Positions 100 to 36,856 of a stretch of DNA of 64,000 nt are shown here, piece by piece (position 1 is the stretch's first letter; each line of letters starts with the position of its first letter). The DNA is from Vitrella brassicaformis CCMP3155 (taxonomy: Eukaryota > Protista > Chromerida): assembly GCA_001179505.1 (NCBI GenBank), contig CDMY01000013.1:1-64000 (forward strand), in the 5' to 3' direction. The position numbers and the translations under genes were made by a program. Below the pieces are notes generated by a model, which did no database searches, had not been told where the DNA came from, and was given only the letters and a program-made list of their open reading frames with translations.

Positions 100-827
100 T
101 CATGTAAGTGGGTCGCCGATAAGCCCAGCCAGCCTGCATGTCACCGTGGGTCGCCGATAGCCCAGTTCGCCAAGGCCACGTGCCTTTTCGTGTTCGCCTT
201 CGTGTTTGCCTGCCTGCTTGTTTATGTTGGACCTCTCTGCCGCTCTTTTATCAACGCTCGTGATCTGTGGGACTCTGCTATCCACACAACAACTTCAACA
301 TCTGTGACTGTGTGTCGAAGAGTCTTTGATGAACATGTTGATCTCTCCATTTTTCTTGGCCATTTGTTGTTCCATGTCGTAGATGGCCGTCGTGGCTTTG
401 ATGGCGTCAGCCTTCAGTTGCTCGAGATAGCAGAGTTGCTCGTCCACAGGCTTAGCAGAGAGAGCTTGAAGTCGGTCGCGATGGTCGTATTTGACCACGC
501 CAGGTAGCTGCTCCTCAGCTGCTTGCAGCTCTTTCCAAGCTCTGCACAGGCTGGCAAGTGCCTTGACGGTGGAAGGGACGGGCATCTTTGCAGAATTCAT
601 CATGCACAATCCTGAATGACGGGAAAGGTGGGGGCAAGCGAGCGGGCCCCCTGGAGAAAAGGCAGTCTCTATCGGAGTCTCAACCGTTTCTCACCGCCCC
701 GCCTTCGTTTGAATCCTCCCCCTTCGTCTGATCCTCCGTTGCCTGAGGTTGTCTCTTGCGTGTGCGCTTCCTTCCCATCGAGCAGAAGAGACGGAGAGGA
801 TAGCTCAGTTTGTTGTCGACCTCGCAT
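100..827 (-). CDS. Hypothetical coiled-coil protein (spliced; 3' end uncertain), divergent from the RepHel gene
   Basis: ATG at 827 (MRGRQQTELSSPSLL...GGFKRRRG). A GT-AG intron at 694-612 joins it in frame to ORF 295-609 (LCRAWKELQAAEEQL...LEQLKADAIKATTAIYDMEQQMAKK), which is helical and coiled-coil-like. The frame resumes after the TGA at 295-297, so it is either degenerate or has a further intron. Confidence 0.4.
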
Positions 828-945
828 CGTGCCACCCCGTTCGGCGTGTGTCTGCATCTGTATACGCTGCAGTCGACAGCCCAAGTACGTGTGACCATCT
901 TTGCACTGAGCGAATCGTTGTGCAGTATCGGCCTCGCAGGATATC
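784..945. repeat. Dispersed repeat, copy 1 (partner at 14800-15042)
   Basis: 784-881 aligns to 14800-14889 with 7 mismatches and one 9-nt indel (cagaagagacggag.ggatagct.agtt.gtt...gcatcgtgccaccccgt.cggcgtgtgtctgc.tctgt.tacgctg.agtcgacagcc). A second block, 894-945, aligns to 14996-15042. Confidence 0.95.
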
Positions 946-1427
946 GATGATGATTGAAGCCGTCAGGGAAGAACGTAATGCTGTCGTCACCTGTTGCCTT
1001 GCACACGGTAGGGATGCAATGTATGCATGCTCGTTAGTCTACGAGAGTGTCCTGCGCGTGTGGATGCGTGTGTGTCCCCCCTTCAGAGGCTCATTGATTG
1101 TTGAGCAAGGCAAGGGGTGGAGGACATCATACGAGTTGAACTTGGCTGAACAGAGCGAGACGTTTGTGCAGACTCATAGGGCGTCAGACTCATGGAGACC
1201 GAGGAGAGCGACAGCGACGATTTCATGGATTGTCTATCCGACTCGGATTTCGTCCCATCTCAAGAAGGTGGTATGCAGAGTGACAACGATTATGGTGGCT
1301 TCTCGTCGTCACTGTTGGGTGAGAACGTATCTGAGGCCGAGGGTGAGAGTACCGCCTCCGAGACAGAAGCTTCTGATGTCGAAGATGACATGGAAGGAGG
1401 CCAAGAGGGATCTGCCGTTCCTGTCCT

Positions 1428-1830
1428 GTGCAAACTGCAATGAGCCCGGCTACAACTGTCGGAGTTGCCCTCTCGTCTGCCGACTGTGCTTTCAGGAAGG
1501 ATGCGGTAGAGGCCGTCGATGCCCCGAGTATTCTCAATATGCGGTTTATCGTCGACGAGGCTATGCTGCTAGGAGACGTGAGCCACTTCTGGATGCAGAG
1601 AGCGCTGCACGTGTTTTTGGGAGGCACTGCTGTCACAACTGCGGCCGAGTGCCCATCACGGACCACCACATTCCCATGCAGCTCACGGCCGTGCCGTCGA
1701 CACGGCTGTCATCGCACATACGACTCTCTACTCGACGGGGCTTCATTGGCCGATTTCCACGGATGCGTGACATCGGCCGGCAAGAGTATGTCTTGTGTGA
1801 TGAGTGTCTTCACCATCTCACATCGTCGAC
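1428..1830 (+). other. Zinc knuckle and Cys clusters in the N-terminal part of RepHel
   Basis: CANCNEPGYNCRSC (CX2CX4[H>Y]X4C), CRLCFQEGCGRGRRC, CCHNCGR...LCDECLHH. Confidence 0.65.
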
Positions 1831-4800
1831 AAACGAAGGGCCGTTTCATGACGTCGACCGGAGCACGTGATGTGTCGCCTGGCCGGCGATCCTCGCCCAC
1901 AGCATCGGCACTGGATCCATCGTCAATGCGAAAAGATCTTGTCGATTCTTCCTCAGTCGGTGACCCTTTTCTGGGCGGGTGCAGGTCATTTTTTCGACGT
2001 GTACAGCAGCTATCATGGTGATGGAGTACTGCTGTCTGCAATTTTGCTGCTCCGTGGCGATTTCACGTAAGGCACCTTGCTTGACGGCGTATGCAGAGTT
2101 GATTTCATTGATATTTTCTGCAGGTCACCTAGTTCGCAAGCCTCAGCACTGTTGGACATTTCCGTAGAGCGAGAGGCTATCATTGAGGCGATTGACGGGC
2201 TGGTCGGTTCAAATGCAGTGGCAGCATTTGATAGACACGTACCTCCAGAGGTGAGCGAGCCATGCACACTTGATTGCATTGTGTCTCCGCGGCAAGTGCG
2301 CATTGCATTGTTTCAACGCGTAGGTCCGGTGTCCGTTTGGCTGCTGGGAGTTCATTGAGCTCTCTGTTCTCTATTCAATGGGGCAGATCTGGCACCTGCT
2401 CGACGATACCTATGAGTCGCCCAAGAAAGGCGAGGGGATCGCAACAGACGGCTTTCGGACGGACTGGCTGACGTTTGTGATAGAGGACTTCTTCGGATGG
2501 CGCATCGGTCCGTGTGTGGCGTGGCGACGAGACATAGGGCTTGCCTACTGTTCGTGTCTCGAGCACGATCCAAAGAAGAAGGGGCCCATGCGGTTCCTTC
2601 ACGTGCCCAGAAACCCCTTCACGCCAGATGCCGTCGTGCCGACTGATGGAGACCGGCTGGCTCGAATCGTCCCCAAGCCCCATTGGTATCGCTTGAGGCG
2701 CCTGGGCAGCAACTCTGCCGCCACCAGCATGCACTTTGTGAATGTGGCCTACGACGGCATGTCCGGCTTCAGCCTCGTAAACCGAGCGCGTTTTGACCGC
2801 CAAGATTGGCGGCTTTTCGCCCTCGAGGGGTCAATCCTCAGCTGCAACCGGCAGCTGCGTGAGTATCACCTAACTCACGAGGACCCGGCGCATGCCCAGT
2901 GGGCTGAGGAGCACCTGGAAGGCTACTCTCGCGAGTTCCCTTTCGAAGCAGCACGTGCAGAAGAGCAGCCGTTCCGTGGTGTGGAGTCGTGTGGAGCAAC
3001 GTATGTGTCGTCGACCGATGCGCTCGACGATTATACGGCTTTCATGGCCTCGGACTCTATCGATGTGGATCGACCGGGTGGAGTGGGAGCGGCGCAAGGG
3101 CAGACCGACCGAACGAGCCCCGCAGCCTCCGGCGGCGCAGATGGAGGAGACAACGACGATTCCAATGTCCGTCGGGCCAATCAACGGCCCATCATCTTGC
3201 GCCCGCTTTGTTTGGTCCATCCAACCACTTCGCACGGTGCGGCAATTTACGCGATCCCATGTCTCAACCACCAATTCGGCGACCTTTGGCTTTTCGCGCG
3301 GCTCATGACCATGTCTCTTCTCTCTGCCTGGCGTTTGATGGTGGGGCGGATCAAGGCCGTGCAGCCTGTCCAGCATCCTCCTGCAGCAGCTGCGCACGCC
3401 CCAGGGACACAGAACCCCCCGCCCCCCAACAACAGCAGCAACACCAGCAGTGGACACGCAAGCACCACTAACGGAGGCCGTGCGTTGGATCCTCACTTGA
3501 TGGAGCGCCTCTGGCTGACAGACGCCGTCAACTTTGCAGTGGGCATTGTGGAGGGGCGAAGCCTACGCAACGAGCAGAGACGTGGCCGCGGCCGACAGCC
3601 AGCGACAAGCTACTCACGTTTTACGTCGTGGTTCTCACGGGCGATTGGTCGTCAGCCGTTCTCTCCCAACATGCTGCTGAGCGGGTTCCTCTGCTGGGAG
3701 GGCGTGAGGTGTGTGCCGTGGCTGACACCCCGCAGCGAGGGGATCACTCAGGAGGCCATTCACCGCGTCCTGAGTGGAACCGTCTTTCGTCAGCAGGACA
3801 GCGTGCTTCCAGTGCCCGATGTGTTGCTGTTGATGAACAACCAGCTGCCTGCGCAGGGGGATGTCTCCCTTGGTAAGATGCATGGATGTGGGTGACGGGA
3901 TAAATGGGCGCGTGAGTGCATGTGTCTAGGTCTCTGTATGGCGCTGAGTCAATGTGCTTGGTGTCATTTTGAATGTGTGGTGCAGCTACGGTCCCCGATA
4001 TGGTTCATAGCTTCGTGTTCCGCGGGGAGGCGTTTGATATGGTCTGCATCGTCTCGGTTCTCCCACGGGATCCGGAGGCTCATCTGACTACCGTCGAACT
4101 TCGCCACGCCGCACCAAGCTACAAGACAGCGGCTCTGATGCGGTGGAGCCGAGACCATCCGGGCCTGTGGTTTGCTAATGATGGACATGTCCCTCAACGA
4201 GCGGACGCCCTACTGCAGCGGCCGGAGGCTAGACAATGTGCTGCTACAGTCGCCGCCTCATCGACTACAGCCATGCACGTTCGGTATGGTGCGGCGGTTC
4301 CTGAGGATGCGGTCCTTCGCCAGCGTGAGCTGATGAGTGGCCAGGCCGTTGCCAGGTGTCACGAGCACTCCAACTACTTCCTGTGCGTCGTGTCTCCGAT
4401 GTCGCCGGTCCAAGAGTCGGTGCATTGCTGCCACCCACCCTATGATCCGACTGAGGACGGCATGACAGTCCGGCCAGCAACGTGCCAAGCCAAGGTTGTA
4501 CGATTCACTTGTCCGTACAAGTCTCACTGCGGCAGTGCTGTGAGCTGGCAGTGTCCGGTCGGTCTCTGCAAGCAGCACTTCACAGACGTCAGCCGGCAGG
4601 TCGAAGAGGGATCTGTATCTATTTGTTTCCGTCCCCGGCCCCCGCCGTCCGGCCCTTCAGCAGCACCCCGCCCATCTGCAGCCGCGGCCCCTCCCCAGGA
4701 AAAGGAGGTTCGAAGGGACGACGACGAGAGGGAGGCGGCCGCTCAGCGTGACCGGCAGGAGTGGGAGGCAATCAATGCGGCACTGCAATCGGGGCCGCTT

Positions 4801-5601
4801 GACGAACAGCCAGTGTGTGACGAGAGCGAGAATCCGGACGAGCACCGGGAGCGTGCCGCATGGCGGGCGACAGTGGACGATGCAGTCACGAACGTGGGGC
4901 CTCCCGAGTTCGGCACCGATGATGCGGCGGCCGACGCCAGGCTGATGGACCCGGACAGCAGCGAGCTCCCCCTCTATTCGGTCAGCCCGCATGGCGACCG
5001 CGTGTGGGCGCACCTGGTTCTTAACCCGTGCCTTCGACTCTTGCGACGGCGCTCGAAGCACGATACGCGGATGACCCTGTCGGCCGAGCGCTTTCTGCAG
5101 ACGCTTGTGGCCAAGGACGGTGCTCGTCGGGCCAAGTTGGAGTCCCCGGAAGCCTTGCTGTTTCCGAGTGTCTTCTTTGCAGACAAGGACGACTATACGG
5201 CGCTTGGGGCCCTTCCGGCCTCCATGCTGGCCTCTTCAACGTGGAACAAACAACGGCGGATCGCCTCCGCTATGGACCATTTCCGAATACGTCTTTGCGA
5301 CCACTCGCTTGCGACGGCGCGCAGCGACAACTACATCGCCTTCATGTACAATATCAAGACCGACATGGAGCTGTCGCACACTCATTCGGCGCTGGTGCTC
5401 AACCGAGGCCCGGAGTTTCTGCAGACGCGTCGAGACGGCCAGGCTAGGGAGGCGACGGACACGGCACTACCGATGGATGCGACAGAGGCCCGGAGGCGAG
5501 TCCGCGAGGTGAATGCCTGGACCGAGGTCGGTAGCGGCATCACCAACGAGAAGATCTCTACGGAGGAGCTGCTGCGGCCACTGGTGACTGGCAGGGAGCT
5601 T

Positions 5602-6665
5602 CCCACATACTTCTACACTGTGACACTCAATATGTCTCAGCAATTCGGTATGTAATCGAAAACTAACCGTATCCATCAATCAGTGTGTCTCTGTACATGT
5701 GTGTGTCTGTGTATGTGTCTCTTCGTCGCATCTCGTGTCTATGTGCATCGACAGGCTTCGCCAGGCTCTACAATCGCATCGTCGATCTGTACACGGACAC
5801 CGCCGGCAACAGAGATGAGGACGCTATTCATTCCTTCATGCCGCTGTTGCTGCGCTGCTGGTATCGGGTCTTTAAGTGGATCATCCGCTACATTAACGAG
5901 AGCGGCATCGCTGGCGAAATCCTCAAACACTGGATACGGTAAGGCACTTTTTGACGGAGCAAGGGTGTCTTGGCTGCGTGCGTGTCGTGCAGGGTAGAGT
6001 TTCAGGCCCTCATGGGGCACTTCCCTCATCTGCACGGCCTGCTGGCCACCTTCGAGGACCGCCTATCGACGATCGTCACCGATCGGGTCATCGCATCGAC
6101 CGACTTCATGGCGGCCCGCCGATCGTCGGACGTCGGCAAGCAGCAGCAGTATCCCATGGAGCACTTCACTGAGGACCGGCGGCTGCTGCGTGACCCTAAG
6201 GATCTGCAGAACCTTGAGGATTTCATCAACGAGCACCACCGCCACAACTGCCACACTGCGGGAGGGCGGTGCCTGAAGGAGGTGCTGGACCGGGACGGCA
6301 ACGTGAAGAAAATCTGTCGCCGGACACGGAACCGTGTGACCAACCAGCACATCTACGAGCGCATCACCTCAAACCACTCCGCCGAGACACTGAAGATACT
6401 AAGGGAATGGGGGCTGACAGAGGAGTCGGTGGAGCGGGCCGTCTATGTGAGCGGCCTCGACGGTAGAAGCCCCACTGCTGATGGCAGTGAGTACCCGCTG
6501 GAGCGCCCAGTGGTGGAGCTGGAGGGCGGCAAGCATTTTGCGCCGTCCGTGAGAGGCGACGAGGACATGTCTCCCTTTTTTCCGCCCCTGGCTGCTCTAC
6601 TGAAAGCATCCATCAACGTGCAGATCGTTGATTTCTTCTTCAGCGGTGGATATTTGGACAAGTAC
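5602..6665 (+). other. HUH Rep (rolling-circle initiator) domain
   Basis: Motif 1 PTYFYTVTLN (5602). Motif 2 VEFQALMGHFPHLHGLL (5994-6045). HxCH...C segment. Motif 3 YLDKY (6651). Confidence 0.85.
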
Positions 6666-8499
6666 GTACATCAACAGGCGCTGCGTGTCTCCCCGGCATG
6701 TTCGTGGATCGATGGTGTGATGTCTCGACACACAAACAGATACGCAGCGGGCGCCGAGGAGAATGCCAAGGCGATATTGAGAGTGGACAAGGACTCTGAC
6801 AAGAATGTGCTGACCGACGTCCGTGTGGACGGCCAGAGCATGCAGAATCTCAAGATCAGCGGCGTGCAGATAGCGGCTTCTCAGAAAGCAGGCCAGCCAG
6901 GTGCGGAGGATGCTGAGACGGCACCGGCTCACCAGCGCAAGAAGCAGGCGAGGAAGACAGACAGCAAGGACAACAAAAAGAAGGGCCGCCACCGCGACGA
7001 GCGGCATCGAGAGGCACTCAAGGTGTGCATAGCCCAGATGCTCTGGGACCTGCACGACTATCCCTACGTCGTCTCGTCCGTCGAATTCGTCCACGTGAAC
7101 TCGTGCCCGCCCGAGCAGCGGTGCGGGTTCACCCCTAAAAACACCAGCTTGTCCGCGAATGCAGTGCAGAACGCGCCCTAACAGCCGCGGCCCGCCAACC
7201 CACAGGGGTTCCGATCTGGTACCTCGCCCATTCCCATAGAGACACGGCAGCGCGACCTCGCCAACGTGCCGTGGCGGCAGTTTACCGAGCCTCAGCATGG
7301 GATCCTGTACGACCTCTTTACTACCTGGAAGCCACTGGATAAACTGGCCGTCTTCGGCATTCGGCATCCCGAGCTGCTGTGGATCGACAGCCTCGAGGAG
7401 TACTTCAAGTGAGTTTTTCATGGATACACCTTCACCTCCTGGACTCTAACGTGAATGTAATGTGTGGGTGTCTCAGGTGGCTGGTCATCTCTGCACGGCC
7501 GCAACTCAGCAGCCGGCAAACATACAACTCCTCTGTCTCTGAGGACGTTGCCGCCGTGCGGTTCGTCGACGGCAGTTTGCAGACGATCAGATTTCGACAG
7601 CGGTACCTCGAGGAAGCCAGGCGGGCCTGCCGCACACGCTGCTGTTCTGACGTGCGCCACGCTTCTCACGCGCCCATGGTGGAGCTGCTGGATCGCCTAG
7701 TGCGCTCCGTGGTGGACCTGAGCACGGGAAAACCCGACGTGGACGTCGAGCTTATCGACCGCTTCGTCAGCCGTGAGCCGAGACACAATGATCGTCCCAT
7801 CGCGATCGTCTTCTCATCTATTCGGCCGAGCAACCCGCACAAGTTCCTCATCCACCTCCTGTACAGGTTCGGGCGCTTCACGTGCGACATGGACCTGTTC
7901 GAGGTGTCGAGTCTGCGCGAGAGCTTCATCCATGCGGGGCTGCTAAACGATCGACCCGACGACAACACGGAGGCTACGGCGAGAGACGCTGATCGGCTGC
8001 TGCGGCTCTGAGCGCGGCGGGAGCTGTTCAACGGGTCGTTCACCACCAAGGCGTTCGATGCCGCCCTCGAGATGGCAAAGGCTACCATCTTCGACCTGTT
8101 TCTCGGGCGGCCCATCCAGCTGCCCGGGGTGCCGCTGGTCGACATGGCATCCTTGCAGTGGGAGTTCGAGGAGTCTGTCAAGGAGGCATGGAAGGAGCGC
8201 CGCAAGCGCCTGAGTGTGGCCCTGGCGGGAGTGCTCGACGTGCCGGCAGCGCAGCGGCCACAGCTGCTGACGACACTGCAGGAGTCGACTCTGCGGCAGC
8301 CCTACCTCCCTCTCCGTCCGACACCTCTATCTGCGGGCCCCACACCATCAGCACAACAGCCGCGCTGGCAGCCTAACATCCAGCGGGCCGTGTCCATGGG
8401 GCAGACGACCGCATCATTCGACGAGCAAACGGAGGCCTACCACGTCGGCCAAGAGATTCTGGACGCTGCGAAGAGCGGGCTCCTCTCGTGGGTGCCCGG

Positions 8500-9830
8500 C
8501 CTGGTGCTCGTCGGACGGGCCGGCAGCGGGAAGACCCACGTGATGTGCGAGTTGGCCATGTACGCCATCGGGCTCGGGTTTGACATCGAGATCACGGCGC
8601 TATCCTCTAAACGCGCGCAGCAGTTCGGAGGCCTCCACGCTCACAAGCTCTTTGACCTCCCGGCGCACCAGAGCAACTTCCCGCCTCAGGTGCAGGCAAA
8701 GACGGCCATCGCCTCCCTCAGCCGCTCGCCGATCCGCTGGAACCTGCTCAAGGTCACTCACTGCTTTTTCATTGAGGAAGTGGGCCTGCTGAGTGCACAG
8801 ACCATCGCGGCAATCGACTGCATCCTTCGCTATGTCCTCAACAACCAGGTGCCCTTCGGTGGGGCCATCTTCGTCGGCACAGGAGCGGTCTGCCAGCTGT
8901 CTCAGCTGGGCGGAGACACCTTCTGGTCGTCCACCTATCTCATCACCTGCTTTCGCGTAGCGGTCCTCAAGCACGGCATCCGCTTTCTGGACCAGTGGCA
9001 GGAGGAGGTGGTGGATATCCTTGAGCGGCCACGCAACACTCCGCAGGAAATCGCCCGGGTCGTCCAGCTCGTCGCCCAAGAATGCAACTACGTCCAGCGA
9101 TGAGAGGACATTCCTGTAGCGGCCATCATAGTTTTCAGCAGGCACGAGGCGGAGAACGCCGCTGTCGACCGCTTCGTTCAGGGAGTGCAGCGAACCACCA
9201 ATGTTGTGATGCACACGGTGAATGCCATCGATGAGGTGTCAGACCTGCCTGGCAGGTACGCAGAGACACAAGGGTCTACATGTGATGTGAAGACGTGCGC
9301 GTGTCGCGTCAGGTGGAGGATAACTCGAGACACGCGAGTGAGCAAACGGCTGTCGAGCCACGTCGCCGAGGTGCAGCAACTTAAACTCTGGGATGGAGCC
9401 TACATGCGCTTCACCAGCAACGTCAACGACCGAGGCATCTCTAACGGACGTCTGTGCTATGTGGAGGACTCCTCACATGCCGGTGACCTCCAGACATCGC
9501 ATGTGGTTGTCCGTCTCTGCCCTCGGACGATCGACATCTCGTAGCTGCAGACAATCACACCAGCAGTCATCCAACAGTGCCCGCAGGTGCGAGTGCCCCG
9601 TGTCGCTACAGTTGGCATGCAGCTCGATCACCGCGGCACCATGGGCCGTCGCAACATGTTTCCGCTCGTCCATCATACCGCCTACACCATCCACAAGGCC
9701 ATCGGAGACACAGTCCCCCTGCTCGGCACCCGCATCATTTCAAGGCTCGTCGCTTCAAGACATCTGTATCACCTCTGGGAGAAAGCGCAGCTCCTGGTAC
9801 TCCTGTCTTGTACGATGCGCCTCAACCGTA
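8500..9830 (+). other. PIF1-family SF1B helicase domain
   Basis: Walker A GRAGSGKT (8513), Walker B FIEEVGLLS (8768), PFGG...G(A)VCQL, NGRLCYV, FPL...YTIHKAIGDT (9659-9712), and motif VI QLLVLLSC (normally Q.YVALSR). Confidence 0.92.
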
Positions 9831-10039
9831 TCTACTTCAACAACACCCAGGCTGAGGTTACCGCTGCCATCGAGCAGCTGATGCGGGAGAGGTCTGCCTG
9901 GCTGGCGCACTGCCTGGCCAAGGTCAGAGCGCTGGACTGTCTCTCTACGAGAGCTTCCACCACCGGACAGAGCAGGCCTCTTGTAGTCGACTACAGCCAG
10001 TTCCCGTTCTCTCGGCGGATGATCGACATCCCGAATGAC

Positions 10040-10290
10040 AATGTGGGATACGCTTACGCTCTGGGCAGCACGCGCGACGACTCCGAGTTCTACATCGGCT
10101 CGACCAACCGCCTGCAAGACCGCCTCGCCGAGCACAACAGCGGGCAGGGGCCGCCCTTTACACAGCGGCTGCATTTGCGCCCCTGGTATCTTATCGGGTA
10201 TGTGGCGGGGTTTGGCGACTCGGGCGACGTCGACAGCAACAAGGCCTCACGGCGAGACTTCGAAGCCCGCTGGGATCATCGCATGAAGCT
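10040..10290 (+). other. GIY-YIG endonuclease domain (SLX1/UPF0213-like), in frame at the helicase C-terminus
   Basis: VGYAYALGS...FYIGSTNRLQDRLAEHNSGQG..FT...RPWYLIGYVAGF...RRDFEARW, in the same ORF (9587-10330) as helicase motifs V and VI. Confidence 0.88.
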
Positions 10291-10349
10291 CGCCCCGTCG
10301 TGTATCCATCAGAGGAACAGCTGCGATTGACGACATTGTCGCCCACATG

Positions 10350-10401
10350 AATGATCTCGTCTCGCACTTTCTCGCAATGATCTCGTCTCGCACTTTCTCG
10401 C
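10350..10401. repeat. Perfect 26-bp tandem duplication
   Basis: aatgatctcgtctcgcactttctcgc x2 (10350-10375 and 10376-10401). Confidence 0.97.
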
Positions 10402-10859
10402 GAACGGCGCCAGACCTCATCAGTGCAGCGGGCTCACGGGCGTGGTATGTGTCGAGCCAGTGCAAGCGCCCTCTTCCCGTCCATCCGACTGAGGTTACGA
10501 GCTATGTGTATGCTTCTTTTGAGGCGTTCTCTATAGGATATCTGCGTAGAGTGCAGAGAGACATGGTCTGTTTGCCATTGTGGGACTTTCAGCTATTGTG
10601 ACACCAAGCAAATCAGGGTCTTTGCCCGTGTGAACCAAATCAAAGCACGGCGGCGCTGTGTGCTTTCTGTTCAGCAAATTCATGCACTCACATATATCAT
10701 ATATATCAGCAGCAGCAACCTGAGGTCTTTGCCCCTTGTCGAGCGACGAAAATACGGCATATCGGCTCATGTCTTTCTGTGGAATAGCCTATGAATCAAA
10801 AGGTATACTGTTAAAGCTTATATGTATATATTCCCACACAAACATACATAGATACATAC

Positions 10860-10939: not shown

Positions 10940-13900
10940 CAGTTCTCAGGGCTGAAACGCGTTGGGCGGCCTGCGTGGCGGCGCGGACGGTGAGCGAGGC
11001 TATCGGCACCATCCTCGGCGCCTGCATCCGCTGGTGTCTCCGTGGCGTCATCCTGCTGCTGGGCCGCTTGTGCTGCTTGGGCAGGCTCAGCAGTCTCCTT
11101 ACCACAGAGGCCGGCCTGAGCGGAGCCGGCTCAGCAGTCTCCTCTCTCGTCGTTAGCGGAGCCGGCCTGAGCGCAGAGCAATCCGATCAGAGCAAGTCCC
11201 TGAACCGTACCGGCCACGTCAGAGGGAGAGGCACGCTCGGCGTCGACCTCGGACTGGGGCTGGGGCTCGGTCTCAGGCTCGTGCTCAGGCTCAGGCTCGG
11301 GCTCAGCGACAGGCTCGACCTCACACTGTTCGACCGGACCGGCCACGGGAGCGGTCTCACGATCATCAACGGTAGCCCCCGGCTCGGCGGTGAGGTCGAG
11401 AATCAGTTCCAGCCCAAAATTATCGTCCATGGGCATGCGAGAACCTGGCAGATAGTCATTCATCATGCCACACCCCTGACAGTGTGGTCTCAACACTGAC
11501 CGTCATGTATCTGGGAGGGTGACACATACGGTGGGACGCAGACCTGCGGCATGTCAGTCGGCCCTGCACACACAGACATGGACAAACACACGCATATCTG
11601 CACGCACATACACTGTCAATAAGGGTGTGTTCACCTGCAGGAGGAGGCGGCGGGAGTGACGCCTCAACATCCATCGAGTCACTCTCAATTGTTGCATTGA
11701 GACGGGTGCGCTTCGGGATGGCTTCAACGGTGTGTGGTACTGTACACAGACACCATCAGAGAGAGACAGAGCAGAGACACAAGGAGAGAAAGGCACAAAG
11801 AGATAGAGACAGTATGAACTCCCATGTCTCTGTCTCTGTGTATCCTACAGCGTAGGTGTAATAATACTCACCTTCTCGACGCTGCGGCAACTGGGTCCCG
11901 GACCGCTGGGCTCCAGGCGGCGGGAGGTTAGGGAACACGTCCTTCATCGACAAATTGCCGCGACAGAGAGAGCAGCTACGAGAGGTGCAGGAGGGCTTCG
12001 CCGACCACGCGCAAGAGCGGCATGTTCCCTGCCCACAATGCGGACACTGCACCTACGTGTTTGGAGGACACTCCTTCATACACACGGGACGGTACTCGGC
12101 GGCGGAATTGGTGGTGGCTTGAGGGTTGGGGTTGGAGTTCTTATTGCCATTCCCATTAGCGTCGCACCGTTGGCCGTTAACAACTACACCAGGGGGACAG
12201 ACAAAGGGGCCTGTCGGAGATGCGGCATCCCGTAAAACACGGCCCTTTCCTCTGGTCTTCTCCTTAGCGGCGCTCTTCCTTTTGCGGGACGGCTTCGGCT
12301 TGGGCTTCGACCTTCCGGTGGTGGGAGCGCTGCTGGTGCCGGTGCGGTCAGCAGCTTCGCCAGAATTCGCTGTACAACGCTGCCCTCCTCGGAAAGCCTG
12401 CTGTTGCTGCTGCTGCTGAGTCACCATCTCCATACGGACAGCCTAACAGACGGACACACAAAAACTATGACAAACTAAGTAAAAGGACAGCAGACATAGA
12501 CATACTATGTTGTATCAAGACAAGAAACCAGTGCCGCGTGTTTCATCACATATTCTCAAACATGTATGTACACCCACATCGACAGCCTGATAGTGGCCGG
12601 GGCCGCCATTGGGCCCTGGCGTAAACAGCAGGTGGATCGTGCGAATCGTCCACGGGGATGGAAGGGGCGTGGTGGTGGCCATGTCGGGGTTGTACGGGTA
12701 GAATTGATAGTGCTGCACTCGGTCAATCCGCGTTAGCGCCGTCGGCAGCGAATACCACACATGAATGTTCACGCGCCGCTGCTGTGCGATCGTGCGCAGC
12801 TCCACCTCTCCTCCCTCGACTCCCGGCTGTCTCATCTGCTGAATGTACTCCTCGCGAGTCCCCGCAGCGCCGAACACCTCATCGTCCTCCTCGCCTCCCC
12901 CTTCAGCACCAGGGTTAGTTTGCCCACGATTGCGTGGCGCCTGCAGTACGAACCGTCCGAGGTGAGGCCTGCACACAAACGCAGCAATACAACACACATG
13001 AACAAGCCAAGAAGACATGCGATTTTCAGTGAAGACACACGTTTGCGTACCACAGCTCGTTAACGGCGGCTACAGTATTGCGATGGAAGTCATGGACGAC
13101 ATTCATGTCGACGACTTCCTCGCGGGGGACAATATTTAGGGCCTGAGCTGCTGCAATAAACAAGCAGTCGCCTTGGCTCGCGTTGTTTGTGCGTATGAAA
13201 CGGTATGTCGTGCCGTCCCCATATGTGCCCGTCAACTCTCGCTTCGAAAGGTAGACTGGACGCATGTTGACCGGCTTGAGATCACAAACGCAATGATAAA
13301 CAGCAAGCCCTTTGCGCGACAAGGTCACTCGCCTGTCCGCTGCGTCGCACTGCGTTGGGGGTGCCACAGAGCACCAGCAAGAGGAGGAGGAGGACACGTA
13401 GGCGTCCACTGCTTCGGCTGAAGACCCTGGGTCTGTGCTGACGAAAGGTGCGGGGCCGTGTACCTGTTCAGATCCACTTTTGGCCCGGCCTCTATAAAGG
13501 CCTCACGGCCATGCACAAGATAGATGGCCACCAGGTGGATGTTCCGAGCGTGGTCGTACTTGTGGGGCTGCCCGGAGTGTTTCACCTACCCACACACCAA
13601 CACGCGCGTCGTCTTGAGGAAGTTGTTGAACTCGACCTCAAACCAATCAAACACCTCCGGATCGACGTTGCCAGGCTGCAGGCTGTCAATGGCATTCGAG
13701 GCTATCACTGGATTACCATATCAGGAATCACACAAGTGGGTGATGTGCTGTCGGTTTCTTCTTCTGGCTGGTTGCGGCCAACCGTATTGGGTCAGAAACC
13801 GGCGGCTCTGAAAGTGCGTGAACCCGCCAAACTCGCTACACCCCACTTGTGCCGACACCACAGCAGAGCTGGCTATAGTTTGCGCCCGCTGAAGACAGAC

Positions 13901-14835
13901 GTTGCATCCGTCTCCGCGGTATTGCTTGTCGCACAGACTCCCACCGCACGCGGCGACCACTTGAACAACGGCAGAGACACACACATATACACACACACGC
14001 CCGCCCGCACCCACACACACCCATAAGCAGACAGACCCACAATCAGCCAGAGAGAGAGAAACGAGGTTCTTTCAGCTCTCTCTCTCTCTGCCGACCCCAG
14101 TGACAGCAGATCGTGCGTGTCATTGAAAAGGCAGACACACATACAAATTCACACGCATACAATGGCATTCCTGCCTGGTATGCTGTATGCTGTATTGTCT
14201 GGCTCATCCGGCGAGCTGACACACCCGTGCGGTGTCTTGCGGCGTGTAATTGATTAGGCCGAACATTCTTCGAGACCTCAACTCTCTGACACACACCGTT
14301 CTCACACAGTTGGCAGCACAACGAAGAGTTAGAGTAAATGATGGCCTCCTCATCTGTCCCCTCCTTTCGCTCACATGCAGAAGAAGAGGGTTGAGTATGT
14401 ACACACCTGGCCGGGAGCCTGACCGCCGCTGCCGCCCTGGCCTGCCTGCTGCTGCTGCCCCTGCTGCGCACCGGCTCCGCGGCCGCTTCGACGGTTCAGG
14501 GCCCTCTTTGTCAGCGTCAAAGGGGTCGTGCCGGTCTGCCCGGTGATGTGCATGATAATGCACTGCAGCTTCAACCCCATGCCGCAACGGGCCAGCCCGC
14601 CGGTCGCGCTGTCGGCCTCCACCAGGGCCTAGGGCGTGGTGGCCTGGATGCCCCGCCGGTCGCAGTAGGCGCGGGCCGACCGGATGCCCTCGTTGACGCC
14701 GTCCCTGGCGAAGAAGTGGGCCAGTTTCGACTCGGCCGCCGGGTCTCGGCCTTGGCCGTGCCCTCCAGGCACCACAAGAAGAAGAGCAAAGAGAAGCGAC
14801 AGAAGAGACGGAGGGGATAGCTTAGTTCGTTGCAT
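10940..14835 (-). pseudogene. Multi-exon OTU cysteine protease (deubiquitinase-like) plus RING finger gene, disrupted
   Basis: OTU catalytic SQGDCLFIAAAQAL (Cys at 13164-13166), EYIQQMRQPGVEGGEVELRTIAQ and IHLLF...GHYQAV (His at 12593-12595). RING-like CMKECPPNT*VQCPHCGQGTCRSC...CSLCR (11950-12085). Acidic EPEPE tail at 11131-11430. In-frame stops with the frame continuing at 14629, 13721, 13586, 12053 and 11131. Confidence 0.75.
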
Positions 14836-15042
14836 CGTGCCACCCCGTACGGCGTGTGTCTGCGTCTGTGTACGCTGGAGTCGACAGCCGAACGAAACAA
14901 GGAGGAACAGAAGGGGGCTGAGAGGAAGGGGGCCCCAGGAAAGGGCCCCGCAATGGGGACCGGAGACGCGTCTCAGCGTTTACATTTCCCACACAACCAT
15001 CTTTGCAGTGACCGACTCGCTGTACCGGCCTCGCAGGACATC
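14800..15042. repeat. Dispersed repeat, copy 2 (partner at 784-945), with a ~105-bp segment in place of the short spacer of copy 1
   Basis: Direct alignment as described for copy 1; same orientation. Confidence 0.95.
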
Positions 15043-15115: not shown

Positions 15116-15987
15116 ATGGCGGTCTCTGTTGGTGGTGTTAGTATACCGAAGTGCAGTCTGTGTCAGGATGACTATCTGGCGCATGGACCCAAGGCACCCA
15201 TTGTCCTCAGATGCGGTGATCAATACACACACACCGCACACAAGGCCAACACGTGAATCAATGTGGCTGTGTGTGTGGCTGTGTGCGTCGCTCTGTGTGT
15301 TCGGCGCTTTCTCTTTGCTCAGGTCATTCCTTCTGTGCGGCGGTGAGTGAGTGGGCACGGAAGAGGGTGTTGGTGACACTGCCATGCTATGTGTCTGTCT
15401 GCAGTGTGTGAGACAGTGCATCCGCCACCATCCCCACGAACATCGTGTTGCCAACTGCCCCGTGTGCAGGTAAAGCGACACACATATGGGTGTGAATGGG
15501 TCGTTCAACATGTCCCCCTGCATTCGGAAGTGCGTCGTGTTGATCAGGAGGGGGACTGCGGAGGCTGACATCCAGGCCAACCACGGCGTGAGAGAGGTCA
15601 TGGTTTCCCTCCTGGCGGTTCACATGCAAACGGTGAGACAAACAAACCGACACACACCGTGACTACGACAGCCATGCTCATATCGTGTGTGTGTGTGTGT
15701 ATGTGTGTGTGACTGTCTTCTTGGCAGGTGGATCTGCCGAGGGGCACTTCGCTAACCCGACAGCAGTACCACGGCCTGCTGGGACTGCTGGGCGACCACA
15801 CTATGAAGCTGCAGTCCGTCTACCGGTATGTGTGCAGCCGACAAACACAAGCAGAGGGAGAGGAACAAAGCATCGTCTGCGTGTGTACGTCAGGTCATTC
15901 CGTGACGGCACCTTTGTCGCCGATCTGAAAAAGTTCTATGCGGATGAGATAGAGGTGCTGCACGTGTGCACATTTGGCGTAGCATGA
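15116..15987 (+). CDS. RING-finger protein with a truncated TLDc-like C-terminus
   Basis: Spliced MAVSVGGVSIPKCSLCQDDY...PIVLRC|GHSFCAA|CVRQC...VANCPVCR (C3HC4 RING), then KLQSVYR|SFRDGT, which resembles the TLDc start LLYRASRDG. It stops about 25 codons later. Confidence 0.75.
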
Positions 15988-15999
15988 GCTGCTGCTTGA

Positions 16000-18641
16000 A
16001 TGTGAGTGTCGGGTGTGCGTGAGAGACATAACAGACCTATCAATGATTTCTTGTCTACATTCCGTCCGTCCAGTTGAATCCATCAGCCAACCACACATAA
16101 ACTCACCACCCAACAGGCAGACAAGCACGTAATCCATGGTGATGCGCTTGCTGCGGGGTGTCAGCCACAGACCTCTCAGCTGTTTGATCATGTCTGTCTG
16201 TGTTTGTCTGTTTGCTTGGTCATCTCTTTGACTGTTTATCTGTTTGTCTGTCTGTCTGTCTGTCTGTCGATTTGTTTGTCTGTTTGTCTGCTTGTTTGCT
16301 TGTCTGCTTGTCTGTCTGTCAATTTGTTCGTCTGTTTGTTTGTTTGTTTGCTTGTCTGCTTGTCTGTTTGTCTGCTTCTCGTCCAGGACGGTGTGCCGGA
16401 GAGTCAGTCTAAGGCCGCAACGGGACGCCTCGCTCTTCACCGCACGGGCAATCAGCTCACAGACGCCCATGCGGTGCCCCGGTGCCACGGTAAAGCACCG
16501 CATCGGGGGGTGCCCTCCCTTGCCCAGCACTCGAAAATTGCCAAGCATGGCCCGGCTGACCCCCTGCTGTGACGGGTGGGCGGTCTCTGGCTGCTTCTCC
16601 ATCTCCTCGCTGGGGGTGCAGATTATCCGCGCCGCCTCCGCCACATAGCGGCCCACTGCTGTGTTGATGCGGCCGCCGATCGGCGAGTCGCCGATGGGGA
16701 TGGGAGGGGGTGAGCTGTCTTTGGTGGGGTTCTTTTTGTTGATGCACACCAGGGCGTCCGGTGGGAGGATGGTGGGCTCCGTCCTGAAGGGGATGCGCTG
16801 GGTGAGGGAGGCCATGATGCCGCGTGAGGGCTCCAGGGCCTTGTTGATGGCGTCCATCGCAAGCTGCGGGATCGATTTGTTGAGGAAGTGGGAGTATGCG
16901 GCGATGAGGGTCTTCTCAGCCGTCTCGCTGTCGTCCGACCTCTCGTCATCGTAGGGTCGGTCAGGCCGATAGCCGCACACCCCCGGCAGGGTCTGCAAAC
17001 GCCTCCCGTGCCGGGGGGGGACCAGCCCAGCGGCCGACACTGACGCCCCACGCTCCAACAGTCGGACCAGCACATCCTTGGTCGCGTCTGTGCTGCCGGC
17101 GAGCTTGCGCAGCAGGGTCACGCCGTCGCTGTTGGGCGTGTCCAGGTGCTGGGCGCCGTGGTGGAGCAGCCGCGTCACCGTGGTGGAGTAATTCTGCTGG
17201 ATGGTGTTCATCTCGTCGAGATACGCGTGCCAGAGGGGCCGCTTGCCCTCCCCATCCACCACGTTCACGACATCCCGGCCCAGCTTGGCAACGAAGAAGT
17301 CGATGAGCAGCTCCTGGCACTCGGGGTCGGTCAGCGGGTGCTGGCAGAAGCGATGGATGGGCTGCATCCCATCCTCCACCTCCGTCAGCACAGATGCGTC
17401 ACGATCGGCGATGCTCTTGATGACGCTCAGCACCCCCTGCGGCTGTAGGGGACGGAACACGCGCCTGTCGTTGTCGTAGCCACCTGCTTGTGCGACGGCG
17501 TGTAGCAGCTTCTGTCCCCCTACTGCAGCGGCATGCTGCGGGACGAGCATGGCCTCCACCAAATCCCAGTCGCCCTTCTTGGCCGCACGGCTGAGGGCGA
17601 TGGCACACTGCCCATCCACAGCCGCAGGGCACCCCGCAGCGAGAAGCAGGCGCACGAGGTCGTCGGTGTCGTTGCCGCCATGGTACTCGGCGACCAAATC
17701 GATGAGCGTCCGGGCGGCACCGCCATTGGTCGCCGTGATGACCTTGGGGTCGGCTCCATACTGCTGTATCATGCATCTTGCCGCTGCCGCCTTGATGTCG
17801 CCGCACACAATGCTCTTGGCCAGCTGCCGTGTGGCCTGAGAGGCGCCGTTGAAGGCGATGGTTGTGGCGGAGTCGCGAGGGTTGCGGCCGAACGCTGAGG
17901 CGTTGTGGTCGAAACGGCGGATCTGCACCTGGTCGGGCCATGGGGCTGGGGGGCTCTGTGTTGTAGTGAGGGCGGTGAACGGCGCCGGGGGCTGGGGAGA
18001 GCTCCACACTGACGAGGAGGAAACCTGAAAGATGATTCCACACACGCACAGAAAGGCCATGTGTTGTGTATGTCCCGCATAATATCTTGTGTGTTCCGGC
18101 CACCGACCTGTGAGGTGTCTTGAGCGTGCCATACAGTGGTGTATCTGGAGGAGGGCATCGGGTCCCAGCCGCTGTCGCTGACCACCACGAACAATGTGTC
18201 TGCATCCACACAGACGCTGCGTCCCTCCTGACTGGTCGAGCAGATCATGGAGCCGCCGCCGAGTCCGAATCCAGAGTACTGCCGTCGGGCCCTCTTCTTC
18301 TCCCGCTGCTTGATCCTGCCGTCTGGGCCGACTATGGCGTAGCAGTACACATGGTCGCCCGTCGGCACAGCCGCGCTGAGGGTCCAGGTGTGCTGTCGCG
18401 CGACGTCTATGCCTGTCGGACGCGCCATCTTGAGCACCTTGCCTCCAATAATCAGCGCAACTGTGCCAAACACACACATGGTGGACATCACTCTGCCGCA
18501 TGCCTGCATTCCGTTTCCTTTGCTGTCCGTACCTGCGTCGCCGGGCTCCATCCGTGGTGCGCAGTAACCTGCGTCTTCTTTGAAGGTGACCGGCACCACA
18601 TGACTTGGTGCTTGAGGCTGCTCCGATGCCGACGAAGCCAT
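16000..18641 (-). CDS. Ankyrin-repeat protein of a lineage-expanded family (3' end approximate)
   Basis: ATG at 18641 (MASSASEQPQAPS). The large exon 18025-16385 has ankyrin-like units: LVRLLLAAGC, ALSRAAKKGDWDLVEAML, QPIHRFC, KRPLWHA...TRLLHHGA, DGVTLLRKLA...LVRLLERGASV. Confidence 0.75.
16190..16378. repeat. Degenerate TGTC/TGTT/TGCT tetranucleotide tract (intronic)
   Basis: About 190 bp of tgtctgtctgtttgcttgtc-type repeats; source of the spurious QTNRQ peptide repeats. Confidence 0.9.
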
Positions 18642-36400: not shown

Positions 36401-36856
36401 GGGGCGGGCCGAGCGAGTGGGCTTCTACAACTCGTTCTACGTCCAGCACGACCCACACATCCTCAAGGTCAGGCAGCAGGGGAGAGCACCTGACTGACCT
36501 GCAATAAACGTCGCCGTGCTGCCGTCTTATGTGGCGTGTGCTGTGCGTGTGTGTGTTTAGGATGCGGAGGTGAGTGTGGACGCCGAGACGAATGAGTGTT
36601 ATGCGGTGCGTGCCAAGACGTTCGTGAGCTACCAGTTCCACCCTGAGTCAATGCTGACTCAGAACGGGCTCGAAATCATCCGGGACACTATCAAGTACAC
36701 ACACACACACACGAGCAATGTGGGTGAGCATGGGTGTGCTCTTCTCTGTGTGTCTGTCTGTGTGTCTGTCTGTCTGTGTGTCTGTCTGTCTGTGGGTGCA
36801 GGTATCTGGTTCCCCTGCCGCAGGCCAATGGGTGCGCGGCGGCAAATGGCAATTAG
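33449..36856 (+). CDS. Fused chorismate-binding plus glutamine amidotransferase enzyme, PhzE-type anthranilate/ADIC synthase (TrpEG)
   Basis: Spliced GEGSSFV, EFGSYWKF, GATPEKH, MNPISGT, KEIDELFMVTDEELKMM, HTEY, SMFAPTVTGSPMGNAC, RRYYS, DSCITIRT, VGATLVKDS. GATase part: NNEDDFAHML, GPGPGDP, AVCLGHQ (Cys), ERVGFYNSF, QFHPES (His-Glu). Confidence 0.93.

Follow-up and report, generated by a model that had tools for sequence, protein, structure and literature searches.

We analysed a 64,000-nucleotide (nt) stretch of the genome of the chromerid alga Vitrella brassicaformis CCMP3155 (GenBank assembly GCA_001179505.1, contig CDMY01000013.1, positions 1 to 64,000 of the forward strand), which as a whole is called the window below. 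Its plus strand between 669 and 10649 very probably holds the transposase gene of a Helitron-like rolling-circle transposon, a gene that is transcribed and correctly spliced and has been inactivated. It belongs to a clade in which the Rep-helicase (RepHel) protein of such elements ends in a GIY-YIG nuclease domain. We are confident that this clade is old, diverse and essentially undescribed, and that its proteins are single chains of ~2,300-2,800 amino acids (aa) with the parts always in the same order. In all likelihood this order is an N-terminal region of ~900-1,200 aa, a two-tyrosine HUH Rep, a Pif1-like helicase and a GIY-YIG domain of the SLX1/UPF0213 type. The N-terminal region, to judge with a similarly high degree of confidence, is composed of a Cys4 module, a module of ~450 aa without detectable fold relatives and a Cys/His-rich module.

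RESULTS

Structure and transcription of the locus

The plus strand of the window contains a series of long open reading frames (ORFs) in alternating frames between 700 and 10,600, where the GC content is 55-61%. The exon map (Table 1) is based on the transcript contig L008 (9,308 nt, transcriptome-type sample JGI 3300017297), which was retrieved through a look-up of a near-identical 245-aa product, and on RNA contigs of the public run X1. L008 matched the window at 100% identity in ten blocks from 669 to 10649, the sole discrepancy being a 10-N scaffold gap. This gap is also the source of an apparent 13-nt insertion/frameshift in L008, which was rejected as a biological feature. Exon bounds were set by picking the GT..AG split at each junction between L008 blocks. 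L008 and the X1 contigs together gave nine introns, all of them GT..AG. Independently of L008, the X1 contigs over 4600-10500 contained four GT..AG joints and a loose end that resolved into a fifth intron.

The spliced sequence was built from the window DNA, its frames were counted, and it was compared with our own family hidden Markov model (HMM), A1, described below. From 2131 to 10294 the spliced sequence is a single frame and gives a one-domain match to family HMM positions 212-2434 with a score of 1200 (E reported as 0). This frame is broken solely by the stops at 7179, 8009, 9101 and 9542 and contains no frameshift. A fifth in-frame stop, the TGA at 1868, lies further upstream within the Cys4 module. 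Since the Cys4 module is read in a frame other than that of the main body, there must be at least one frameshift between 1918 and 2131. A second frameshift near 1440 is possible, and applies only if the acidic ORF at 1192-1443 is part of the protein. The pieces in the window are collinear with positions 91-2434 of the family HMM. Removal of the intron at 6662-6739 restores the sequence YLDKYAAG, in agreement with the family consensus YLxKYaaG, and in the stop-to-stop frame 9545-10327 the GIY-YIG domain follows the last helicase motifs without a break. Among the window ORFs, Pfam identified PIF1/AAA_30 in ORF 8072-9100 (E 2e-6) and GIY-YIG in ORF 9587-10327 (E 7e-8).

An initial annotation, made from the DNA sequence, had joined the separate ORFs into one protein and had placed helicase motifs V/VI and the GIY-YIG domain in one uninterrupted ORF; the spliced frame bears out both statements. 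It counted seven introns, four stops and three frameshifts, which is close to the present totals of nine, five, and one or two, respectively. The order of Rep, helicase and GIY-YIG that it proposed was right, and the three Rep motifs that it listed are present by eye and align to the family profile. The acidic tract and zinc knuckle that it put in front of them have neither HMM nor family support: no match to the family HMM and no Pfam match was obtained for the acidic tract or for the CCHC-like knuckle.

The longest ORF left in the spliced mRNA (1,615 aa, 1852-7178) encodes the N-terminal modules and the whole Rep without the helicase, and stops just past the Rep. In the public protein set of the alga, the locus is represented by a 237-aa 'GIY-YIG' protein, the model of which begins in the middle of the helicase. 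Neither a further RepHel copy nor a tRNA gene was found in the 64-kb window. A second transcribed copy is present in the alga (contigs L006/L007), with 65-69% nucleotide identity to the copy in the window. Rep, helicase and GIY-YIG follow in the same order there, and this copy has stops of its own as well as two frameshifts, one of which lies inside the GIY-YIG domain. Both copies seen are broken and both are transcribed, and the family looks like a fossil in this alga, extinct yet still expressed.

A family of RepHel proteins ending in GIY-YIG

The frame 9545-10327, containing the helicase end and the GIY-YIG domain, was used as the query in a HMMER search of 1.84 billion cluster representatives. 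At E ≤1e-3 the search matched 603 representatives, of which 295 also passed E ≤1e-10. Almost all of the top 150 matches were one stretch over the helicase end and GIY-YIG, and many lay at the C-terminus of proteins of 2,300-2,800 aa. Eighteen long relatives were aligned over their full length to give the alignment and profile A1. Pfam recognized GIY-YIG in all 18 of these proteins, PIF1 in 15, Helitron_like_N in seven and Exo_endo_phos in none. The best Helitron_like_N match among the relatives had an E of 1.1e-7; for the member P0003 the score was 29.9 bits, the cut-off being 28.9.

Each of the 55 retrieved proteins with a length of 1,900 aa or more (1,900-3,137 aa) gave one single-domain match along the whole A1 HMM. 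Among the 195 retrieved relatives, a single alignment ran from helicase to GIY-YIG in 179, from the HUH motif to GIY-YIG in 64 and from an N-terminal module to GIY-YIG in 43. The catalytic columns of the GIY-YIG domain are largely kept (Y in 182/186, Y in 172/186, R in 170/186, H in 183/186, N in 176/186 and E in 163/179). In the 18 relatives, H1108/H1110 and Y1283/Y1287 of the Rep are invariant or nearly so and the Walker A motif is invariant; the Rep motifs of the window copy align to this profile. At family level, the proposal of a rolling-circle lineage with a GIY-YIG nuclease is supported by the continuity in 179 of 195 relatives, by the presence of GIY-YIG and absence of Exo_endo_phos throughout the 18, and by the absence of GIY-YIG from the 117 HLE2-type proteins described below.

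Comparison of the A1 profile with known structures gave matches to Pif1 (E 1e-25), to the Helraiser helicase (E 5.5e-20), to SLX1 (E 8e-14 to 4e-11) and to UPF0213 (E 7e-7). These values agree with the earlier description of the nuclease as SLX1-like. Together with the profile comparison to HLE2 proteins in the next section, they support the Rep, the helicase and the SLX1-type GIY-YIG domain alike. As for the HMM check proposed with the initial annotation, PIF1 and GIY-YIG were called in the window itself and Helitron_like_N was not, the latter being called in the seven relatives given above.

One family member, P0181, is a 2,190-aa UniRef protein assigned to the hagfish Myxine glutinosa, with 44% identity to P0003, and it ends before the GIY-YIG domain. 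It may represent a genuine copy in a vertebrate, but a truncated gene model or contamination would also account for it.

Relation to HLE2 proteins and Helentrons

A set of 117 proteins of the Helitron-like element 2 (HLE2) type was collected by a search seeded with a distant match. These proteins, several of them from oysters, fish and amphioxus, carry DUF6570, Herpes_teg_N and in some cases Exo_endo_phos; GIY-YIG occurs in none of the 117. The A1 profile was aligned by hhalign with a profile of 16 HLE2 proteins of the DUF6570/endonuclease type with a probability of 100% (E 8.5e-51, 1,065 columns). The alignment begins in a block just upstream of Rep motif 1, takes in the HUH motif and the tyrosines and stops where the helicase ends; the first ~900 aa of the family did not align to the HLE2 profile. 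DUF6570 (PF20209) is named as an HLE2 marker by HELIANO (PMC11417382). It was found in none of the 18 members, and four N-terminal regions searched at E ≤1 had no match to it either. We considered that the N-terminal region might be a diverged DUF6570, and this was ruled out by the Pfam result and by the start of the hhalign alignment only at the Rep-proximal block.

The Rep and helicase cores of 46 family members and 23 HLE2 references, together with the window helicase, were placed in a quick maximum-likelihood tree, with near-identical duplicates excluded. In this unrooted tree the family lies on one side of a branch with a support of 100 in the Shimodaira-Hasegawa-like approximate likelihood ratio test (SH-aLRT). 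This branch, 1.6 substitutions per site in length, is the longest internal branch. The window helicase falls inside the family (SH-aLRT 97), nearest to P0183. A tree of this kind had been suggested with the initial annotation; the present one separates the family from the 23 HLE2 references.

As a rough yardstick of distance, the profiles were also compared with Helraiser, a member of HLE1, and with cellular Pif1. The HLE2 profile reached Helraiser with an E of 6e-85 over Rep and helicase and Pif1 with an E of 5e-80, whereas the family profile reached Helraiser with an E of 5.5e-20 over part of the helicase only and Pif1 with about 1e-25. This profile comparison suggests that the family is an outlier relative to both Helraiser and HLE2.

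The nuclease of Helentrons had been said to stand at the position that GIY-YIG occupies here. In the five Helentron references examined, 75-105 aa separate the helicase from the start of Exo_endo_phos. This is the place of the GIY-YIG domain in the family, so the premise, once tested, holds. Of the nuclease swap proposed on this basis, the part that stands is a different nuclease at the same place; replacement of an apurinic/apyrimidinic (AP) endonuclease would presuppose descent from Helentrons.

Copies, ends and mobility

An intact 2,455-aa member of the family is represented by six near-identical proteins in one metagenomic ENA assembly (ERZ25074608). Four loci encoding it (L001-L004) were fetched and lie on different contigs, which measure 120 kb to 1.4 Mb and have a GC content of 38%. 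They have 25.8 kb in common at 98.7-99.5% identity, with sharp ends of homology. Since the copies are ~99% identical, the relatives are mobile, and the 25.8-kb element is a candidate for a member that may still be active. Every copy is adjoined head to tail by more diverged related elements. At the junction the element ends in ...CGCTAGGTGGTC and the next one starts with GGGGCGC (...CGCTAGGTGGTC followed by GGGGCGCTATTCCC...). With elements on either flank, the target site cannot be read. A GC-rich hairpin is found ~55 nt inside the left (5') end, not at the 3' end, and the ends of the 25.8-kb element revealed no clear inverted repeat. Its other ORFs have no Pfam match save a weak one to GDSL-lipase.

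In the window, a 14-kb unit with the RepHel gene and an OTU-like gene is bracketed by the two copies of a ~100-nt direct repeat (83-92% identity), the left copy lying in the 5' untranslated region (UTR). The secondary structure of the block was no better than that of shuffled sequence, and it contains no significant hairpin. The bracketing repeat would fit a head-to-tail arrangement and is no proof of the ends.

N-terminal region and protease passengers

The first 492 aa of the N-terminal region of P0003 (residues 28-519, orthologous to window ~1613-3349) were modelled with a predicted local distance difference test (pLDDT) score of 88 and a predicted template modelling (pTM) score of 0.83. 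Searched as one piece, this model found no fold match (Foldseek against PDB, best E 0.86; VIA wide, best Z 3.8; ESM Atlas, template modelling score ≤0.30). Further along, just before the Cys/His cluster, the beta-rich segment at residues 590-680 of P0003 (~window 4050-4330) has a weak likeness to the palm of ubiquitin-specific protease (USP) deubiquitinases. Two aligners gave this result, with a Z of 5.5 for USP7 and almost all of the Foldseek top 50 being USPs at E 0.2-1. This segment may be a degenerate pseudo-protease.

Cysteine proteases recur in the family. An OTU domain is fused N-terminally in P0041, P0050 and P0052 and C-terminally, past GIY-YIG, in P0073, and P0172 has a Ulp1/C48 domain after GIY-YIG. 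These varied positions point to repeated independent acquisition. On the opposite strand of the window, beyond the RepHel gene, lies the OTU-like gene (Table 1). It is probably a passenger of the element, a reading made plausible by the recurrence of cysteine proteases at varied positions in the family. No similarity was found by phmmer between the window OTU ORFs and the OTU parts of family proteins. Over the OTU ORF the contigs L009 and L010 run collinear with the genome, and so bear on neither its splicing nor its expression. Past the OTU-like gene are a Cys-rich, RING-like ORF (11756-12052) and then an acidic repeat ORF. Elsewhere in the window, imperfect low-complexity tracts of the (TGTC/TGTT)n type with an 8-nt period were seen at 16185-16404 and 36719-36806, the former within a long minus-strand ORF (15895-18501), where the tract codes for a QTNR/QTDK repeat.

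Table 1. Coordinates of the RepHel-GIY-YIG locus and neighbouring features in the window
Feature	Position	Strand	Basis
Transcribed unit, very probably a RepHel-GIY-YIG pseudogene	669..10649	+	L008, X1 contigs
Exons 1-5	669-1007, 1087-2066, 2124-2250, 2324-3872, 3986-5647	+	L008 blocks
Exons 6-10	5755-5938, 5993-6661, 6740-7408, 7477-9255, 9313-10649	+	L008 blocks
~100-nt block, left copy, in exon 1 (5' UTR)	783..884	+	Repeat comparison
Acidic-tract ORF, 83 aa, membership uncertain	1192..1443	+	mRNA frame is that of the main body, intervening stretch in other frame
Degenerate CCHC-like knuckle CANCNEPGYNCRSCP, Tyr for expected His	1427..1471	+	Read from sequence
Cys4 module CHNC ... LCDEC, conserved in family, HMM 91-174	1613..1918 (Cys4 at 1631-1819)	+	Family HMM
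TGA stop inside Cys4 module	1868-1870	+	Frame comparison with family HMM
N-terminal modules, function unassigned, HMM 212-1109	2131..5526	+	Family HMM
CPxGC block within N-terminal modules	2324-2353	+	
Cys/His-rich module within N-terminal modules	about 4300-4620	+	
HUH Rep catalytic core	5608..6764	+	Motifs read from sequence, aligned to family profile
Rep motif 1 YFYTVTLN	5608-5631	+	
Rep HUH motif VEFQ..HFPHLHG (VEFQALMGHFPHLHGLL)	5994-6044	+	
Two-tyrosine motif, GGYLDK / YAAGAEEN	6645-6661 + 6740-6764	+	Split by intron 6662-6739
TAA in-frame stop, kept in mRNA	7179..7181	+	X1 RNA contigs
TGA in-frame stop	8009..8011	+	Within L008 exon block 99.9% identical, its one mismatch not placed
Pif1-like helicase	8012..9900	+	Pfam PIF1/AAA_30; family profile against Pif1 structures; tree
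Walker A GRAGSGKT	8513-8536	+	
Walker B-like FFIEEVG	8765-8785	+	
TGA in-frame stop, kept in mRNA	9101..9103	+	X1 RNA contigs
TAG in-frame stop, kept in mRNA	9542..9544	+	X1 RNA contigs
SLX1/UPF0213-type GIY-YIG domain, catalytic residues intact	10040..10294	+	Pfam; PDB SLX1 6seh, UPF0213 1ywl
GIY-YIG motifs	YAY 10046-10069; FYIG..R..HN 10088-10144; FE 10256-10273	+	
OTU-like cysteine-protease gene, two halves in different frames	12515..13409, perhaps to about 11131	-	Pfam OTU E 0.0024, below cut-off
OTU-like gene motifs	Cys box GDCLF 13146-13172; His box GHYQAV 12581-12598; WGG-like GGEVEL block	-	Read from sequence
~100-nt block, right copy	14800-14892		Repeat comparison

DISCUSSION

Weighing the readings

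Several results weigh against the reading of the locus and of its clade given above. Apart from PIF1/AAA_30 and GIY-YIG, no Pfam match was obtained in the window ORFs even at E ≤10, the Rep exons included, so that the Rep is uncalled in the window copy; a phmmer search of the Rep exon against PDB likewise gave nothing. The relatives were collected with a query that contains GIY-YIG, and any members without this domain would be under-sampled. Three Rep-helicase matches have no GIY-YIG call by Pfam, and two of the three are C-terminally truncated in the HMM mapping. The relatives are almost all metagenomic and without a taxon, the named leads being the one hagfish protein and one diatom-leaning Atlas cluster, in which the few recorded taxa are diatoms. 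The tree covers HLE2 references, without HLE1 or an outgroup, and places the clade relative to those references only. At the possible ends of the window element, only the ~100-nt bracketing repeat was found.

The fusion might be a local accident, in which a host SLX1-like gene adjoins this Helitron copy or was captured once by it. Helitrons are known gene capturers, and HELIANO describes the GIY-YIG of HelenSM92 as 'captured' (PMC11417382). We consider such an accident extremely improbable here, given that the helicase end and GIY-YIG share one ORF, that the second copy has the same domain order, and that the alignment is continuous in the 179 database proteins, which come from many assemblies, and runs end to end in the 55 long ones. 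Chimeric gene calls as the source of the fusion are excluded by uninterrupted ORFs of 2,300-2,800 codons. It is also very unlikely that the locus is a working gene, whether by read-through of the stops to give the full protein or as a domesticated 1,615-aa protein with a separate 237-aa GIY-YIG protein. Transcription of the locus, splicing of all nine introns, retention of the 1,615-aa ORF in the mRNA, the unmutated catalytic motifs of Rep, helicase and GIY-YIG and the annotation of a 237-aa product in public sets could all be cited for it. Against this, stop codons of three types stand at five places, a frameshift severs the conserved Cys4 module, and the second copy is broken at different sites, two frameshifts among them, one in GIY-YIG; moreover, full-length relatives are single ORFs, and the 237-aa model starts within the helicase.

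How the clade relates to HLE2 is a closer matter. It may be an ordinary HLE2 subclade on the same branch as HelenSM92, with GIY-YIG swapped for the AP endonuclease or added at its place, a reading we regard as quite possible though short of an even chance. The HELIANO classifier puts HelenSM92 in HLE2, and HELIANO also reports inverted repeats at the termini and insertion at TT sites; the protease passengers typical of HLE2 (OTU, Ulp1 and UCH-type) are found repeatedly in the family and beside the window copy; the sole non-family match of the Rep-helicase search was an HLE2-type protein; and the Helentron P0278 also matches the N-terminal Cys4 block of the family. This reading has to be set against the absence of DUF6570 from all 18 members, the ~900 N-terminal aa that cannot be aligned to HLE2, the branch of 1.6 substitutions per site between the family and the 23 HLE2 references, and the far better E with which the HLE2 profile, compared with that of the family, reaches Helraiser. 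We tentatively propose instead, as a possibility that is somewhat doubtful at present, that the RepHel-GIY-YIG proteins are a further major rolling-circle lineage outside HLE1 and HLE2 in their present bounds, comparable to the Paramecium clade, with their own N-terminal apparatus of ~1,000 aa, part of it a confidently predicted fold for which no relatives were detected, giant head-to-tail elements of 14-26 kb and a nickase recruited independently of Helentrons. A last alternative concerns the nuclease itself, which could be a homing-type or site-specific enzyme that steers insertion beside resident copies. GIY-YIG homing endonucleases are well known, the 25.8-kb copies all abut related elements head to tail at one and the same junction, and the window unit is bracketed by the ~100-nt repeat. 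Head-to-tail arrays can, however, also be explained by HUH-mediated end recognition or by read-through, SLX1-type domains are structure-selective and not sequence-specific, and the GIY-YIG domain has no recognisable DNA-binding extension; we judge this role unlikely.

A proposed mechanism and its significance

The steps of rolling-circle transposition have been shown experimentally for Helraiser, and thus for HLE1 only. By analogy, the Rep of the present family would nick one strand at the element end and stay linked to it through a tyrosine, the helicase would unwind in the 5'->3' direction, and the second tyrosine would terminate the reaction and transfer the strand. From its position and conservation, the GIY-YIG domain might supply a cut beyond the reach of the HUH enzyme, which is restricted to single strands. 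We favour, at about even chances, a nick in the target or donor duplex that would give the helicase an entry site or the second strand a primer; duplex nicking is also what the Helentron AP endonuclease is usually proposed to do. A reasonable but less probable function would be to cleave, as SLX1 does, a flap or a branched structure at termination; both functions match proposals for the Helentron enzyme. A role in targeting or homing is a minor alternative.

Helitron-like elements are currently sorted as HLE1, HLE2 and a Paramecium clade reported in 2026. To our knowledge, the only accessory nuclease recognized in them is the AP endonuclease of Helentrons, the role of which has never been established. 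That two unrelated nucleases are fixed at one position speaks for a functional need for the extra cut and against a mere passenger. If the proposal of a separate lineage is true, the convergence would imply that Helitron-like transposition faces a general mechanistic problem to which an additional duplex-DNA nuclease is the answer. At about 90 aa, the GIY-YIG domain offers a second and very compact system in which the purpose of this cut can be tested, and the young 25.8-kb copies in a public assembly provide a possibly active member suited to reconstitution. The known host spread covers a chromerid alga, marine metagenomes, probably diatoms and one hagfish protein record, in hundreds of clusters at 50% identity. 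Pfam-based pipelines miss or split the family, because Helitron_like_N matches only seven of the 18 members.

Comparison with known systems

The closest parallel is with the Helentrons of HLE2. In both, one chain contains an HUH Rep, a Pif1-like helicase and a nuclease within about 100 aa of the helicase end; the core is homologous, and both have cysteine-protease passengers such as OTU. They differ in that the nuclease is of the AP/L1 type in Helentrons and of the unrelated GIY-YIG fold in the family, which lacks DUF6570, has its own N-terminal ~900-1,200 aa and is separated by a long branch. HLE2 elements have short inverted repeats at the termini, terminal hairpins and T-T insertion. The only published Helitron-like family with a GIY-YIG besides RepHel that we found in the literature searched is HelenSM92 from Sphagnum magellanicum, to which HELIANO devotes one sentence, describing the domain as 'captured' in an HLE2 family; GIY-YIG is not among the 20 stably associated domains given there (PMC11417382). 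HelenSM92, a single family, was compared by description only. The literature searched contained nothing relevant on Helitron together with SLX1 or with Vitrella. The initial annotation had left open whether the architecture was already catalogued; it has been noticed in the literature, in HelenSM92, but is undescribed as a clade.

Helraiser and HLE1 (PDB 7lcc) share with the family a two-tyrosine HUH domain and a Pif1-family helicase, and presumably the same rolling-circle chemistry, but the family profile matches only part of the helicase. Typical HLE1 elements have 5'-TC and CTRR-3' ends, a 3' hairpin and insertion between A and T; we know of no nuclease domain in HLE1. 'HLE Paramecium' has been reported as a third Helitron clade, at a greater distance from HLE1 and HLE2 than separates those two (PMC13085455). 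Its host, too, is an alveolate, and like the present family the clade is Helitron-like and divergent and has long transposase ORFs; in contrast, GIY-YIG is not mentioned in that report (0 occurrences), on whose description alone the comparison is based.

The nuclease domain itself is of the same GIY-YIG subtype as SLX1 and the bacterial UPF0213 (YhbQ-type) proteins, with the motifs YxY, YIG(E/S)T, RLxxHN, (R)PW and FE..W. Unlike SLX1 proper, the SLX4-dependent subunit of the SLX1-SLX4 resolvase, it lacks the C-terminal zinc finger (RING/PHD-type) and is fused to a transposase; no evidence of an SLX4-like partner was seen. Most members end about 10-40 aa past GIY-YIG, and the SLX1 alignments cover chain residues ~13-94. 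Penelope-like retroelements are likewise mobile elements with a C-terminal GIY-YIG, which is thought to nick the target (PMC6431247), but they are reverse-transcriptase elements without Rep or helicase.

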